NCBI RefSeq assembly: GCF_006345805.1
Contig: NC_042998.1
Location: 29,760,001 to 29,824,000, forward strand
Source: Octopus sinensis
Taxonomy: Eukaryota
Direction: 5' to 3'
DNA length: 64,000 nucleotides
Shown: positions 15,382 to 30,890 of the stretch, piece after piece
Numbering within the stretch: position 1 is the stretch's first letter
Layout: each line of letters opens with the position of its first letter
The notes under the pieces: model-generated
Database searches by the model: none
The model's input: the letters and a program-made list of their open reading frames with translations, nothing else
What the model was told of the DNA's origin: nothing
Position numbers and translations under genes: made by a program

Positions 15382-15426
15382 TCTAGGGTCACGTGTTTCA
15401 GGTTCATTGTCCTTCATCGGCCTAGA
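15382..15426 (-). ncRNA. Type I hammerhead, mutated copy (F2)
   Basis: Same as 15616-15660 except U16.1 to A (15389) and a stem II mismatch (15403); predicted inactive. Confidence 0.6.
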
Positions 15427-15615
15427 GTAGCAGACACCGGTCAGCTGGCGATATTTGTCTCGACTTCGTATTGTATATATCTATAATTCAGTGAAGTCTA
15501 TTCACTGATTATCAAAATAAGAAATACTAAATTTCTAAATCTCTCGTAGAGGCATGTACGGTGGTGGGGCGATAGAATGGTTGTATACTGTCAATCTAAC
15601 ACGAACGTCTGCTAC

Positions 15616-15660
15616 TCTAGGCCGATGAAGGACAATGATCCTGAAACACGTGTCCCTAGA
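15616..15660 (+). ncRNA. Type I minimal hammerhead ribozyme candidate, U4C core (F2)
   Basis: tctagg | CCGATGA | agga caatga tcct | GAA | ACACGTGT | C | cctaga: 6-bp stem I, 4-bp stem II, palindromic helix III, GUC triplet. Confidence 0.72.
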
Positions 15661-16599
15661 TGCAGCTCCGGCGGCCGGGGGTGTTTGTCTCCCCTTCGTA
15701 AATGTATTTAAGGACACAGGAAAAATGTGTCAAAGCCATCAGGAGGCGTCGATGCTTCTCAGGGCTATACAGCGGTGGTGTACCCCCCTACTGTCACGTT
15801 CGAGTTAGATTGACAGTATACAACCATTCTATATATATATATATATATATATATATAATCACAGGTCAGTCATATATAAAAAAATTAGCTCTAATTGATA
15901 AAGGTTAACCAGCATCCACTGAAAAGATACAAGAGTATGTAACTGTGTATTTTCACATTTCTCTGTCTTCAGAATTACACATGTTGGAGTCATAATGCAG
16001 TATTTCACTTGAACTCTTCCTATTTGCTTTATTTATCTGCTTCTCTGTTTCTTTACTTGGCACTTTTATGACTATAGATAACCAAAATGTGAAAAACATA
16101 TATCAACTATAACAATATATCAACATATAATACCAATATATCAACCAATACCACTATATCAACATATATTACCTAATACCAATATTTCGAATCTTCCTAA
16201 TCTTTATGTGTGCTACCTAATTTGTTTGCATTTTCAGATACCTCATATCTGCAAAGTACATAAAATACTTATGTAGTCATAAATCGCTAATGCCAAAATA
16301 CCTTTTTTTTTGCAAATACATATTACTATTAAACGAATATTACGTTTTTTTTTTATTTTTTGGACACTATATTTGTGTAACTTGTTTATTGCCCATACCT
16401 AAAACATATAATAAATGTGAAATGATTTTTTTCATACTTTGCTTTTGTGACTCTGTTATTGTTATTTTGAAAGTTACCTATATTTCTGAACATTCCAGAC
16501 AGTGTTTTCTGAATAAATTACATAATAGAAAATTTGTTTAGACTTTCAAAAATGTTCTCTAACATTCAAAGTTTTTCTGGAACTTTTCATTACTATAAT

Positions 16600-16975
16600 G
16601 GAAGCACTCCGTCGGTTACGACGACGAGGGTTCCGGTTGATCCGAATCAACGGAACAGCTTGCTCGTGAAATTAACGTGTAAGTGGCTGAGCACTCCACA
16701 GACACGTGTACCCTTAACGTAGTTCTCGGGGATATTCAGCGTGACACAGAGAGTGACAAGGCCGGCCCTTTGAAATACAGGTACAACAGAAACAGGAAGT
16801 AAGAGAAAGTTGTGGTGAAAGAGTACAGCAGGGATCACGCCCCCCCTGCCGGAGCCTCGTGGAGCTTTAGGTGTTTTCGCTCAATAAACACTCACAACGC
16901 CCGGTCTGGGAATCGAAACCGCGATCCTATGACCGCGAGTCCGCTGCCCTAACCACTGGGCCATTGCGCCTCCAC
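16600..16975 (-). mobile_element. SINE family C (tRNA-derived), full length
   Basis: Head ggaggcgcaatggcccagtggttagg; 13-bp TSD tcattactataat (16587-16599 and 16976-16988). Confidence 0.92.
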
Positions 16976-18419
16976 TCATTACTATAATTAATAACATAAG
17001 CACAAGGACCCTAAGCTCACGACTTCAGTTTTTTTCTTAATGGATAGGACTATTTGTATAAATGAGAGTTAAGAGGTTACAAGCAAGTTATATGTTCATT
17101 TTGCTATGTCTATAGTCAATGTATCAATAAAACAGCGAACATGTTTTGTTGGAACAATATATCGAGTACTTTTGATTCCCCGTTGCAAGCACTGAAAAAG
17201 TAAAACTTCGATAGTTAATATTTACAAATTTTATTTGTGTGAAGAGGAGATTGTTTTATTATAAAAAAAATTATCATAATGTTTGTTTTTAAATTTTAAA
17301 ATATCGTTTTAAAAGTTCTAATATTATAGAAAAATATATCATATTTGAAAAATGAAGGAGTACCCCTGACATATTAATCTCGGTAAACGAGATTTATATT
17401 ATCTTCATAAAAATTTGGTTTTGCACTTTTGAAGGATGTAACGATGGAGAAAGAAAGCCTTGAAGATTGTAGCGCAATAATCCATGGAACACTGAAACAA
17501 TTGGCCCTTCTGTATAGTGCCGCCCAAAATGTTGTATTGGTATCTGCTCTTTTGTGCCCGGATATCCATTATCGATAATCACGGTGTTACACAGTTCAAA
17601 GTTCCTTGAACACGTTCTGCTGGAAAGGACGAGATAGAGGAACTTTCTTCAAACGAAAGTAGCAAATCAGAACAGGACGAACACATTTTAGGTGCACATT
17701 TTAATTTCAGAGGTACAGGTAAAAAGAAAATAAAGCCATGATAATATTCAAACCAACAAGACGTCACAAATTTATATGCCGGATCGGTGGAACTCTTTTG
17801 ACAAAAGTATGGACCTCGCAAATTAGACGGAGCGACACCTGAGCTTTTCACATGACAAGATCGGCTATGCTTCCGTCGAACTGAAATAAATCAATAAGAA
17901 AGACCTGTAACACAAAAAGAATGACCTGTAATGCTCATGGGTGACGCCTCTTTACTGATAACTCATCCTGGAGTGACATGGCCGGAAAATGTAACGGTTT
18001 CTTTTGTTGGTTCCTCACGCCGTACACCTGAAAAAAGAATGCAGCAGGGATAAGTGTTAGAAGTCCTGATACTTGATGTAGCTTAATGCAAACTTCAAAC
18101 TGGATTATTCTAGTTGTATCAAAAGCAGTTTGAATAACTTTTCTTACTACCTTTAGCTTTGAGATAGCAGGAACTCTATCCATTGTTTTCTTTGTATAGG
18201 ACTTACGTCAACTGTGGACTATTTTGGAAGCTCTGAAATTTGTTGCTTCCACTACTGCACATGCAGTCAGGTTTTATGAAATAATTTGTAATGTCGGTTG
18301 CTAATACGTCTATAGTGTTCAGGATTTGTTACCTAAGTAATCTGAGGCAATTCTCTTTGTCACACTTCCTAGAGCTCACGGAATTCCTCAAAATAGTTAG
18401 CGGAAAGGAGAAAGCAACT

Positions 18420-18888
18420 TCAAGGTTTAATGTCACAATCACTAGTTGAAATTATGGTGAAGAGTTACAGAGAATTGGGTGGTATGAGGTCACTGAATAT
18501 GTAGAACCTTTACGTTCATCGTAAATTCAAGGAATCCATGGAGGCGTAGGAAGCATGGCACTGGGAACATTTTTTCGAAGATATATACGAAGATGTGGAG
18601 GCGCATGGCTTAGTGGTTAGGGTGTTGAACTCATGATCCTAGGGTTGTGGTTTCCATTCCTGGACTGGGCGATGCGTTGTGTTGTTGAGCAAAACACTTC
18701 ATTTCACGTTGCTCCAGTCCACTCAGCCGGCAAAAATGAGTAATCTTGCGATGGACTGGCGTCCCGTCCAGGTGGGGAATGTCTGCGCCACTGAAACCTG
18801 GAAACCGGCCCTCGTGAGCCTGGCATGGCTCGAGAAGGAACATATATACGAAGATATACTGGACTTTGAACGTGGCTACCTATGAGAG
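18420..18888 (+). mobile_element. Degenerate DNA-transposase fragment, possibly CMC/Chapaev-like, interrupted by SINE D
   Basis: With the SINE removed it reads SLVEIMVKSYRELGGMRSLNM*...HWEHFFEDIYEDILDFERGY, which resembles my recollection of the LVENML..Y..LG..MSLK...HGERFHQDI..ERRY motif. Not database-checked. Confidence 0.4.
18595..18841 (+). mobile_element. SINE family D, full length
   Basis: Head gtggaggcgcatggcttagtggttagg; 14-bp TSD atatatacgaagat (18581-18594 and 18842-18855). Confidence 0.9.
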
Positions 18889-29087: not shown

Positions 29088-29789
29088 TCTTATTTTCCTT
29101 ATACATATCAACTTGTCTGATACATACACACATACATACGTATATACAGTATTATTACATACACAACACAGACACACACACACAACCACACACAATATAT
29201 ATATTTATATATATATATATATATATATATACATACATAGAAATTTGCTAAAATGATATATCAGAATAGCATATATAGAACAATTAAGAAAGCAGAAATT
29301 TTGCCGATTATTCTTAATTTAATTTTCTCTTTCAAGAGATAAAATAAAAATAACCTCCATTATAGAGTTATATTTTTAATGTACATATTTTATTTCCATG
29401 TGTTGAATTATGTTTGCCGTCAGGAGACCAACATGAAATGTAGCGTCCAACGTAGCATCAAAGTTTTAAATATAATATAATAGAAACAGAGAGGAAAAAG
29501 AAAAAAGAGAATAAGCAAGAGAGAGAGAGAGAGAGAGAGAGAGAGAGAGAGAAAAACTATTGACAGAGAGGTTATACTGTCGGTACTCGTCTACAAATAT
29601 ATGCGCTTAGATATATGTGTGTCTGTGTGAGAATGTGTGTGCACGTGTGAGTGCATAGTATGCGTAATATATATATATACACTACATACATATAGGTGTG
29701 TGTATGTGTGCTTGCTTGCCCATGAACGCACATGTATATAAATGAGCAAAGGAAGGAAAGAAAGGAATGATGGGAAGAGAAAAAAAAAA

Positions 29790-30205
29790 AAATGACATTA
29801 TATATATAATATATATATATTATATATATATATATATATATATATATATATATATATATATATATATATTATATATATATATAATAGATATATATATATA
29901 TATATATATATATAGATATATATATATATATATTATAGATATATATATATATATAGATATAATATATATATATAATATATATATATATATATATATAAAT
30001 ATAGATATATATATATATATAAATATATATAATATATATATATAAATATATATATATATATATATAAATATATATATATATATATGATATAAATATATAT
30101 ATATATATATATAAATATATATATATATATATATATATAAATATATATATATATATATATATATATATATATATATATATATATATATATATATATATAA
30201 TATAT
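29790..30205. repeat. Degenerate (TA)n array
   Basis: Directly visible. Confidence 0.97.
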
Positions 30206-30321
30206 TGTTATATTCGGAATGGTCATAGTTTCAGTTTAGCCAATTAAAAACACACGCACTATATATTTGGTGTTACTTGCTTCAGTGTTATATATTCTTT
30301 ACATTAATCTTATCTTATTTC

Positions 30322-30365
30322 GGCCAGAGTTCTTTCGTCACACTCCTGTGACCGCATCAGTGGTT
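30322..30365 (-). ncRNA. Hammerhead-like motif with variant core (family F4)
   Basis: Minus strand: cca | CTGATGC g | gtcac aggagt gtgac | GAA | AG aa CT | C | tgg. A9 is replaced by C; stems I and III are short. Confidence 0.35.
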
Positions 30366-30732
30366 CTTTGTTTTTTTTGTTTTCTTCTTTCTTATTTGTG
30401 TCTCTTCTTACTAACCGTCAGCCATTTTGTATTTCTATTGTATGTCTTCATTTGCGCATGCTTATATCTCTATGTGTGTCTATGTTTATTTAGTGTGTGT
30501 ATGTGGGGGGATGCTTGTAATATTTGTATCTTCTGTTTATATACGTTCATGTACTTTGTTTTTGTTGTTTTTGTTTTTGTTTATTCTTATTTTGTTCATG
30601 TGTTTACATCCACTTATTATTATCATTACATATGCTTGTATGTATGTATGTAAGTATGTATGTATGTATGTATGTATGTATGTATAACAACAATACTAGT
30701 AATAATAATAATAAATAAAAAAATATATATAT

Positions 30733-30890
30733 ATTGGCCCCAGGAAACACCGTTTTCCAGTTGGCCATAACATTTCCTGTGTCCTTATGTTTTCAAAGAG
30801 GGGAGATAATCACCTCCATCCAGCAAAGCCCGCTTGCAGAGACTAGTTTCAGAATCATTGCTCATCATCATCAGGACTTGCAAGCTGTCG
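30733..30890 (-). ncRNA. Diverged F2 module with decayed hammerhead (30832-30885)
   Basis: Minus strand: gcttgcaagtc | CTGATGA | tgatgag caatga ttct | GAA | ACTAGT | C | tctgcaagc; ends at (TA)n. Confidence 0.55.

Follow-up and report, generated by a model that had tools for sequence, protein, structure and literature searches.

Four copies of a short hammerhead-bearing repeat in an octopus genome, probably dependent on Penelope-like elements

Results

Four homologous copies of a short non-coding repeat

We analysed a 64,000-nucleotide stretch of the Octopus sinensis genome (NCBI RefSeq assembly GCF_006345805.1, contig NC_042998.1, positions 29,760,001 to 29,824,000; hereafter the window). 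A sequence-only reading had proposed that three highly diverged copies of a repeat, F2, keep a hammerhead ribozyme. The features are as follows, in window coordinates.

15128-15157, no strand: (TA)15, left half of the microsatellite that encloses the whole first insertion (TRF, sequence)
15159-15516, minus: unit L (copy 1 of the sequence-only reading), 358 nt, no ORF
15276-15308, minus: hairpin B of unit L (AGCC..GGAGGC-loop-GCUUCC..GGCU)
15377-15433, minus: hammerhead-like motif of unit L
15517-15606, minus: partial tandem copy T, the 3'-terminal 90 nt of the unit
15607-15825, plus: unit R, inverted copy
15609-15665, plus: hammerhead-like motif of unit R, the best preserved (descriptor match, homodimer fold)
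15734-15766, plus: hairpin B of unit R (+106 to +138 from the first helix II base)
15826-15858, no strand: (TA)n, right half of the target microsatellite (sequence)
26555-26723, minus: copy 2, hammerhead-like motif through hairpin B, without leader
26566-26595, minus: hairpin B of copy 2 (AGCC..GGAGAC-GAU-GUCUCC..GGCU)
26664-26723, minus: hammerhead-like motif of copy 2
30735-30966, minus: copy 3, 232-nt unit
30736-30766, minus: hairpin B of copy 3 (GGCC..GGAAA(A)C-GGU-GUUUCC..GGCC), 3' end of the unit
30832-30885, minus: hammerhead-like motif of copy 3

The three loci originally named (15277-15430, 26555-26713 and 30735-30885) are homologous, with 65-70% identity and E of about 1e-8 in a within-window blastn. 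Both the flank blocks said to be common to them and their alignability by profile search are borne out: an nhmmer profile of F2 finds the same four copies at E 1e-43 to 1e-53 and no other match in the 64-kb window, the block pattern matches exactly four sites against none in 100 shuffles, and a covariance model (R1) recovers the identical set. All three proposed copies are thus real, and a fourth, the inverted twin at 15607-15825, had been overlooked. The ribozyme motif was also rightly placed at an equal offset in each, as a CUGAUGA-like box followed by GAAA, a palindrome and stem I; this type I hammerhead-like motif occupies the same strand and the same offset within the unit in all four copies, the strand being the minus strand of the window at the three named loci. 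Units range from 232 nt (copy 3) to 358 nt (unit L) and are non-coding, the only ORFs that overlap them being short (up to 90 aa) and none being conserved between copies.

At the first locus the order is (TA)n, L, T, inverted R, (TA)n. Unit L comprises, in order, an 81-nt leader, the hammerhead-like motif, hairpin A, a TAAGGACACAGG block, hairpin B and a 3' extension that terminates in ..GTATTTCT and adjoins (TA)n. Copy T, 97.8% identical to 15155-15246, runs without a break into the leader of unit L, so that the two make up a head-to-tail array of 1.25 units at 15159-15606. Unit R is 96.6% identical to unit L, starts 2 nt ahead of distal stem I and 9 nt ahead of the proximal stem, has neither the leader nor the final 52 nt found in both L and T, and abuts T head-to-head. 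Copy 3, the leader of which is homologous to that of unit L, is flanked on both sides by (AT)n (30967-30987 and 30723-30734), its end falling immediately after hairpin B. On either side of copy 2 is a convergent fragment of a tRNA-like SINE head, at 26502-26547 (plus) and 26723-26761 (minus). An assembly gap at 27763-27862, with copy 2 about 1 kb and copy 3 about 2.9 kb away, touches no feature and bears only on the distance between these two copies, on which no result here rests.

The fragments around copy 2 raise the question of whether F2 is a Pol III-driven, hammerhead-bearing SINE mobilised by a LINE, like schistosome Sm-alpha. Flatworms have hammerhead-bearing SINE-like repeats, and the first 40 nt of the head precede copy 2 in the sense orientation; however, the head is missing from units L and R and from copy 3, and the two convergent heads look like rearrangement. 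Moreover, no copy has a poly(A) or LINE-type tail, F2 ending instead in (TA)n and forming tandem and inverted structures, and we regard a SINE origin as extremely improbable.

Every copy departs from an intact hammerhead

None of the four present copies contains an intact canonical hammerhead. The proposal that they keep one was overstated, because in each the core or a junction is defective at one point or more and Rfam calls none of them: its hammerhead models report no F2 copy at gathering score across the whole window, and none at E<=10 in 141-361-nt sub-windows that enclose the individual copies. The GAAA box is invariant (4/4), and position 17 is never G (C in units L and R and copy 3, A in copy 2). 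The 5' core box reads CUGAUGA in copies 2 and 3 and CCGAUGA (U4C) in units L and R, so that CUGAUGA is found in neither of the copies at the first locus. The A15.1-U16.1 pair is present in unit R and copies 2 and 3 and lost in unit L, and helices that abut the core with 1.1-2.1 and 10.1-11.1 pairs are formed in units R and L. The defects are therefore U4C in units L and R, the lost U16.1 in unit L, a broken 10.1-11.1 pair in copy 2, and an insertion with unpaired 1.1-2.1 in copy 3.

In unit R, helix I consists of 6 bp, an internal loop (UAC/U) and 4 bp; the core CCGAUGA (15622-15628) is followed by a 4-bp helix II, AGGA/UCCU, with the 6-nt loop CAAUGA (15629-15642), by GAAA, and by the helix III palindrome ACACGUGU at 15646-15653 (2 bp plus a 4-nt palindromic loop), with C17 at 15654. 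This is the 'canonical metazoan type I' layout set out in PMC4209133. A descriptor of the full architecture is expected to match a shuffled window 0.005 times; made strict for a CUGANGA core, it has no match in the 64-kb window. Unit L has the same core at 15414-15420, a helix II and loop at 15400-15413 with 3 bp plus A.A, and a stem I with proximal (UCUAGG/CCUAGA) and distal (CUGC/GCAG) parts. The palindrome ACACGUGU had been quoted for this copy and does exist, in the inverted twin; helix III of unit L itself (15389-15396, with C17 at 15388) reads ACACGUGA because U16.1 has been lost (U to A). Co-folded with RNAcofold, units L and R form double hammerheads with an intermolecular helix III of 6 bp and 8 bp respectively, the latter as a homodimer.

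Copy 2 combines a CUGAUGA core (26701-26707) with a helix II of two inner base pairs only, the base being broken (10.1/11.1 = A.G, 10.2/11.2 = A.C), a helix III AUCGCGGU at 26676-26683 with one U.G, and a distal stem CAAU/AUUG. Its proposed stem I, UCUGUG/CAGAGA, forms five of six pairs and has one G.G mismatch. In copy 3 the core CUGAUGA (30868-30874) is followed by a slipped extra UGA, within CC(UGA)4GC; helix II is UGAG/UUCU (U.U, G-C, A-U, G.U, with U.U at 10.1/11.1) and has the loop CAAUGA, helix III is ACUAGU (30842-30847), and C17 is present. The stem I given for this copy, GCUUGCA/UGCAAGC, is a perfect 7-bp helix, displaced from the core by a 4/2-nt internal loop (AGUC/UC). Folding of copies 2 and 3 gave no hammerhead fold.

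U4C is known among natural variants of the core and goes with reduced activity (PMC3088659). A CCGANGA core also occurs in an unrelated hammerhead-like element at 24010-23973, and the U4C change creates a CpG, contrary to the usual mutational drift.

Compensatory change in the ribozyme helices and in a downstream hairpin

As first read, helix III is self-complementary yet different in each lineage (ACACGUG(A/U), AUCGCGGU and ACUAGU), and loop II CAAUGA is retained in two of the three. Across three independent lineages, with the structure read from one of them, 80.3% of cells in the hammerhead alignment pair, as against 29-47% with slid partners, and eight pairs are changed on both sides, as against three or fewer. 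The observed values were reached by 0-5 of 500 shuffles. A crude neutral simulation gives P of about 0.02 for the 11 of 14 pairs that copy 2 keeps and of about 0.01 for its four double changes, and G.U wobbles are confined to the hammerhead strand. Compensatory change is found in helices I-III and also in hairpin B, a second covarying hairpin about 100-140 nt past helix II (+99 to +138 from the helix II start), for which copy 3 gives P 0.007 in the neutral simulation. The suggestion that structure was under selection across subfamilies is thus supported, if thinly, by pairing, double changes and shuffles over three lineages.

The same results weigh on the view that the resemblance is fortuitous, F2 being a repeat with a conserved CUGAUGA...GAAA that was never a ribozyme. 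The lack of Rfam matches, the empty strict-CUGANGA descriptor and the failure of copies 2 and 3 to fold as hammerheads fit this view, and the motif is simple enough to originate by chance in large sequences (PMC3088659). Against it stand the rarity of the unit R architecture in shuffled windows, the different helix III palindrome of each lineage, the double substitutions in helices I and II, and a genomic context that is the one known for such motifs; we consider chance resemblance very improbable.

Discussion

The reading that we favour, at a probability of about 0.68, is that F2 elements are short (about 230-360 nt), non-coding, non-autonomous retroelements copied by the reverse transcriptase (RT)/endonuclease of a Penelope-like element (PLE), and are retrozyme-like derivatives of PLE terminal repeats. 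At the first locus a 1.25-unit tandem and an inverted 5'-truncated copy share one (TA)n array, and copy 3 has (TA)n runs on either side. PLEs are marked by partial tandems, by adjoining inverted copies truncated at the 5' end, by a tail that may or may not be present and by a bias towards (TA)n (PMC8557442); the features seen here match that signature, which non-autonomous dependants also leave. Paired min-hammerheads on opposite strands, 100-700 bp apart, are known in PLEs (PMC4209133), and animal retrozymes have been reported as non-autonomous derivatives of PLE terminal repeats (bioRxiv 10.64898/2026.07.22.740005). Long tandem arrays were not seen in the window, where the first locus has 1.25 units and copies 2 and 3 are single, and whole-unit self-pairing is not unusual (folding z = -0.5, +0.3 and -1.85), unlike that of described retrozyme circles.

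No ORF or motif of a PLE RT or GIY-YIG endonuclease is present in any frame of the 64-kb window, and the autonomous partner is therefore unseen. The only RT fragment in the window (6763-7014, minus) was taken for a LINE RT by eye; it has four database matches, without a name or a Pfam domain.

It is conceivable that the copies are instead 5'-truncated insertions or pLTRs of an autonomous, ORF-bearing PLE. A truncated copy of this kind would retain the hammerhead plus about 110-250 nt of 3' sequence, most PLE min-hammerheads are single motifs attributed to truncated PLEs (PMC4209133), and the leader is missing from unit R and copy 2. However, unit L and copy 3, with 65% core identity, have a homologous leader of about 80 nt that begins beside the target (TA)n, and in the T-L tandem the 3' end is joined straight to this leader, so that the 358-nt unit has no room for an ORF. 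In addition, no RT/endonuclease remnant adjoins any of the copies. We therefore judge truncation of an autonomous element to be unlikely.

If F2 is indeed a PLE-dependent element, its conserved 150-nt core would be a cis-acting module consisting of a type I hammerhead with a very short palindromic helix III and, about 100-140 nt downstream, hairpin B at or near the 3' end of the unit. So short a helix III would be stable only by pairing with a second copy, in a double hammerhead within a multimeric transcript. Ancestral F2 elements may have self-cleaved as dimers, and the four present copies, probably old and decayed, would have little or no ribozyme activity. The function during mobilisation suggested by the sequence-only reading is at this point a conjecture. 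Motifs of this type are usually proposed to process tandem transcripts and to form RNA circles (PMC4209133, PMC7229834); in the only PLE reconstituted in vitro, catalytic hammerhead mutants had no effect on insertion (PMC11167929). In that element, Anolis PAc, reverse transcription begins within a stem-loop at +111-118, counted from the ORF start, which lies where stem II begins, and the minimal template spans +20 to +172 (PMC11167929). By analogy with this Anolis Poseidon element, hairpin B and its surroundings may be bound by the PLE enzyme and mark the start of reverse transcription.

A rather doubtful further idea is that the U4C core is a selected state in this genome, not decay. Were it so, U4C hammerheads that depend on dimers, and perhaps on protein assistance, would exist in this genome as a natural lineage, and a Penelope-like enzyme would recognise a conserved hammerhead-plus-hairpin-B module.

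Among known systems, F2 resembles the non-LTR retrozymes of animals (Cervera & de la Pena 2020, PMC7229834; Li et al. 2026, bioRxiv 10.64898/2026.07.22.740005) in being 170-400 nt long, non-coding and of moderate to low GC, in having a type I hammerhead-like motif with a 6-bp helix I, a 4-bp helix II and a helix III that is palindromic, very short and dependent on a dimer, and, to the extent of 1.25 units, in head-to-tail repetition, as well as in a probable origin from PLE terminal repeats. The defining short non-coding unit with one type I hammerhead is found in F2. Unlike these retrozymes, F2 has only 1.25 tandem units, ordinary self-pairing and U4C in its best copy, is decayed, and is known from sequence alone. 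The hammerheads of PLE pseudo-LTRs (Cervera & de la Pena 2014, PMC4209133; Craig et al. 2021, PMC8557442) share with F2 a palindromic 15.x-16.x segment, strong sequence variability with compensatory changes within one genome, opposite-strand pairs 100-700 bp apart, partial tandems, inverted 5'-truncated copies and microsatellite targets. In the typical PLE 'min-HHR', helix II is 6 bp long, A9 is followed by a bulged base and a G10.1-C11.1 pair is formed, whereas F2 has a 4-bp helix II closed by A-U, no bulge and no accompanying RT/GIY-YIG ORF.

Newt satellite 2 and schistosome Sm-alpha, classical type I hammerheads that depend on a dimer, share with F2, at the level of architecture, an unstable helix III of 2 bp whose palindromic loop is extended in the double hammerhead. 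Unlike F2, they belong to high-copy families, tandem or SINE-like, in which the core is intact and cleavage has been demonstrated.

F2 is real but ordinary and matches the known pattern of PLE-dependent elements in animals; it opens no new question, because palindromic helix III, covariation, (TA)n targets and tandem and inverted copies have been described since 2014. It adds one more example of PLE-dependent, hammerhead-bearing short retroelements, possibly a cephalopod one, cephalopods not being named as hosts of such elements in the literature cited here. In this compact case, the ribozyme helices and the downstream hairpin have both undergone compensatory change in three old subfamilies.

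Poseidon PAc of Anolis carolinensis (Frangieh et al. 2024, PMC11167929) likewise has a stem-loop about 110 nt after the hammerhead and AT-rich targets. PAc is autonomous, with an ORF that begins at stem II and an AC-rich stem-loop, and has no sequence similarity to F2; its stem-loop is the site at which reverse transcription starts and insertions end, a role suggested for hairpin B by position only. This match in position could help to define the RNA module recognised by Penelope-like enzymes.

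F2 copies in the window

The three loci that the sequence-only reading had assigned to F2, a short non-coding repeat family with a hammerhead-like motif, are homologous, sharing 65-70% identity in within-window blastn (E ~1e-8), and they also align in a profile search with E values of 1e-43 to 1e-53. Outside F2, the profile built from these three loci had no matches in the window. A pattern of three conserved blocks occurred at exactly 4 sites, compared with 0 in 100 shuffles, and revealed a fourth, previously unlisted copy that lies inverted beside the first and is 96.6% identical to it (the 15.3-15.4 kb copy). 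The features used below are:

15516 to 15159 in sense, minus strand: unit L, the first listed copy, 358 nt
15606 to 15517, same orientation as L and directly upstream: partial copy T, confined to the final 90 nt of the unit
15607-15825, plus strand: R, the inverted twin of L
15609-15665, plus strand: motif of the twin, the best copy, with full type I layout and C for U at core position 4 (U4C)
26555-26723, minus strand: copy 2
30735-30966, minus strand: copy 3

The surrounding DNA is eukaryotic-looking, with ~35% GC, many microsatellites and a single 100-N gap (27763-27862) that has a tRNA-like SINE at its right flank. The gap lies ~1.0 kb right of copy 2 and ~2.9 kb left of copy 3 and touches no F2 copy; only the spacing of copies 2 and 3 depends on it, and this spacing is not used in the argument. 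The gap is irrelevant to the motif. Block-pattern searches for further F2 copies in metagenome contigs (two scans), GTDB genome contigs and IMG/VR found none, and a protein search with a 57-aa ORF overlapping F2 gave no matches.

A hammerhead-like motif in each copy

The copies were read on the strand carrying CUGAUGA...GAAA; in the case of the three listed copies this is the minus strand of the window. As had been claimed, the motif sits at the same offset in each and comprises a 5' stem I, core box, helix II hairpin, GAAA, self-complementary stretch, one base and 3' stem I. In the twin, the 6-bp proximal part of stem I (UCUAGG/CCUAGA) is separated by a UAC/U internal loop from a 4-bp distal part (CUGC/GCAG); helix II has 4 bp (AGGA/UCCU) with loop CAAUGA and is followed by GAAA; helix III is ACACGUGU, after which comes C17, with the predicted cleavage site directly behind it. 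This is the layout of the canonical metazoan type I hammerhead, with helices I, II and III of 6, 4 and 1-2 bp and a small palindromic loop on the last (PMC4209133), and the sole departure is the CCGAUGA core. The U4C change is a natural core variant whose activity is lowered in vitro yet was sufficient in a viroid (PMC3088659).

The helices described for the other copies were borne out in part. The listed copy at 15377-15433 has the motif, but its helix III reads ACACGUGA through loss of U16.1, and helix II contains A.A. Copy 2 retains CUGAUGA and AUCGCGGU, while its stem I carries a G.G mismatch and helix II has A.G followed by A.C at its base. Copy 3 has CUGAUGA, ACUAGU and a perfect 7-bp GCUUGCA/UGCAAGC stem, but that stem is separated from the core by AGUC/UC, an extra UGA has slipped in within CC(UGA)4GC, and U.U stands at the helix II base. 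Judged from these sequences, with a defect in each, the present copies are probably weak or dead ribozymes. The AUG of the core opens a 28-codon frame in the twin (15625-15711, plus) and copy 3 (30785-30871, minus) whose stop codon is the TAA opening the conserved TAAGGAC block; in copy 2 the stop comes earlier. The frame recalls Anolis Poseidon, where the ORF begins at stem II, but is probably non-coding.

Rfam hammerhead families reported no copy at gathering score, nor at E<=10 in sub-windows of 141-361 nt; the E-value list for the full window was filled by artefactual microsatellite 'miRNA' matches. A descriptor with the strict CUGANGA core had zero matches in the window, and one allowing C or U at position 4 matched 15609-15665, where 0.005 matches are expected per dinucleotide-shuffled window. 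Homodimers of both 15.4-15.7 kb copies are predicted to form a double hammerhead joined by an intermolecular helix III of 6 or 8 bp; no such fold was predicted for homodimers of copies 2 and 3. From the whole-element alignment, RNAalifold recovered helix II and two hairpins, A (GGGG..CCCC) and B (downstream of helix II). The intermolecular nature of helix III and the misalignment of copy 3 kept it from recovering the hammerhead as well. UGAUGA...CUGA of copy 3 could be read as a C/D-box snoRNA, but this scored just 8-12 bits with the boxes 12 nt apart and was rejected.

Paired positions covary

When the four hammerhead sequences are aligned, standard pairs occupy 80.3% of cells, compared with 29-47% after the 3' partners were slid by 1-3 columns; 8 of the 18 pairs changed on both sides (at most 3 in the slid controls) and the covariation score was 0.52 (at most 0.18). 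In 500 shuffles, the observed values were reached 0 to 5 times. The earlier claim of covariation therefore holds as far as three independent lineages allow, with the structure itself taken from one of the aligned sequences. In these counts part of copy 3 is out of alignment, and covariance-model realignment left its helix III register unfixed, so that its contribution is under-counted. The twin and copy 2 differ at 13 of 28 paired bases, and 11 of 14 pairs survive, four of them via double changes (P ~0.02 and ~0.01 in a crude neutral simulation). The helix III pairs are C-G/A-U/C-G in the twin, U.G/C-G/G-C in copy 2 and C-G/U-A in copy 3. G.U pairs are exclusive to the hammerhead strand and thereby mark it as the sense strand of the RNA.

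Every copy is predicted to form hairpin B, at +99 to +138 relative to the first base of helix II. The pairs of this hairpin were counted by script and by eye, because MAFFT misplaces the loop gap. The inner stems of the three lineages are GGAGGC/GCUUCC, GGAGAC/GUCUCC and GGAAA(A)C/GUUUCC, and two lineages have AGCC/GGCU as the outer stem and the remaining one GGCC/GGCC, giving two double changes and one change via G.U; for copy 3, with the extra A treated as a bulge, P is ~0.007. Predicted hairpin A was set aside as evidence because of register shifts in copy 3.

Unit anatomy and insertion sites

The blocks recognised by the sequence-only reading are the middle part of a longer unit. In unit L this consists, in order, of a hairpin-containing leader of 81 nt, the hammerhead, the GGGG..CCCC hairpin, an invariant TAAGGAC(A/C)CAG block, the long hairpin B and a 3' extension. 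Copy T, 97.8% identical to 15155-15246, is joined straight to the L leader, so that the two form a 1.25-unit head-to-tail array. The twin abuts T head-to-head, lacks the last 52 nt of the unit and starts 2 nt before the distal and 9 nt before the proximal stem I. A single (TA)n array, with 15128-15157 to one side and 15826-15858 to the other, encloses the whole complex. In copy 3, which measures 232 nt, the leader is homologous to the L leader, (AT)n borders the unit at either end and the 3' end falls just past hairpin B. Copy 2 is without a leader and is bracketed by convergent 3'-truncated head fragments of a tRNA-like SINE (26502-26547, plus; 26723-26761, minus), which could reflect rearrangement, template switching or a chimeric element; along its hammerhead strand, stem I follows directly on the initial 40 nt of the SINE. 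No unit contains an ORF conserved between copies.

Other elements in the window

Two further hammerhead-like motifs, several repeat families and a long inverted repeat were seen:

23869-24010, minus: CUGU-CCGACGA-ACG GGAA CGU-GAAA-CUCUGAGU-A-ACAG, with U4C core
9608-9643, plus: CUGAUGA-A-GGCUGG..CAGCC-GAAACGUC
27878-28050, plus; also 33.0-33.5, 34.4-34.8, 37.5-37.9 and 39.8-40.2 kb: tRNA-derived SINE (GTGGCTGTGTGGTA..GGTTCCGGGTTCAGTCCCACTGCGTGGC..)
10.0-10.55 (partly tandem), 48.2-48.5, 56.0-56.3 and 59.5-60.4 kb: repeat family with recurring ORF text ..RNWYL[IF][YN]RPRKDERQSRPRRNLNSERSGRRNT..
6390-8423, minus: decayed retrotransposon
28492-28758: (GAA)28 facing (TCT)25, ~110 bp apart, a long imperfect inverted repeat

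The first is matched by neither F2 profile nor model and is not alignable with F2; its stem I continues for 5 more pairs, and the element extends ~105 nt further to (TA)n at 23855-23868 and satisfies a relaxed descriptor expected to match 0.045 times per shuffled window. The second resembles the 'min-HHR' of Penelope-like elements (PLEs) in its bulged A after A9, 5-6-bp helix II closed by G-C, ACGU palindrome and missing helix III loop; its stem I complement is absent, and it may have been truncated or match by chance. The SINE has (TA)n/(TG)n tails, occurs in many copies and presumably resembles the abundant octopus tRNA-derived SINE. The retrotransposon holds a gag-like ORF fragment with a CCHC zinc knuckle (7970-8284) and, judged by eye, the apparent start of a LINE-type RT (6763-7014); a database search with the latter found four short Logan/ENA contigs (SRR11869390 and SRR11869384) at 57-64% amino-acid identity, and these four contain no F2 copy. 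Rfam matches of the inverted repeat to plant miRNA precursors are spurious.

Discussion

The ribozyme helices and hairpin B of F2 have been conserved as structures while their sequences diverged, and (TA)n was the target of insertions that left tandem and inverted products. We envisage that two hammerheads in a multimeric transcript would cleave after pairing via their palindromic helix III, a proposal already made for motifs of this sort. By analogy with Anolis PAc, where the ORF begins at stem II and the minimal template spans +20 to +172 (PMC11167929), the stretch from hammerhead to hairpin B may be the part bound by a PLE protein. Reverse transcription would start in or near hairpin B; in PAc it begins in a stem-loop at +111-118, where genomic insertions also end (PMC11167929). 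Insertion of PAc in vitro is unaffected by catalytic hammerhead mutants and cleavage is protein-assisted (PMC11167929), so the function during mobilisation that the sequence-only reading had put forward is left unproven: transcript processing, or the fold as a platform for protein binding, could equally have been the target of selection.

The combination of features points to F2 being retroelements copied by PLE enzymes. Neither a PLE RT nor a GIY-YIG ORF occurs within the 64-kb window, and an autonomous partner is thus inferred rather than seen. Hammerheads of PLE pseudo-LTRs have a palindromic 15.x-16.x segment with many compensatory changes within a genome, and occur as pairs on opposite strands 100-700 bp apart (PMC4209133). 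PLE insertions form partial tandems with an adjoining inverted 5'-truncated copy and an optional tail at one end, and are biased towards microsatellites, especially (TA)n (PMC8557442). F2 is a further example of an already known kind of element. Animal 'non-LTR retrozymes' are small tandem units that lack an ORF and carry canonical type I hammerheads (PMC7229834), and a 2026 preprint argues that such animal units derive from PLE terminal repeats and reports wide variation in the proportion of monomers (bioRxiv 10.64898/2026.07.22.740005). Whole F2 units are not unusually stable when folded, unlike the 'highly self-paired' circles of retrozymes.
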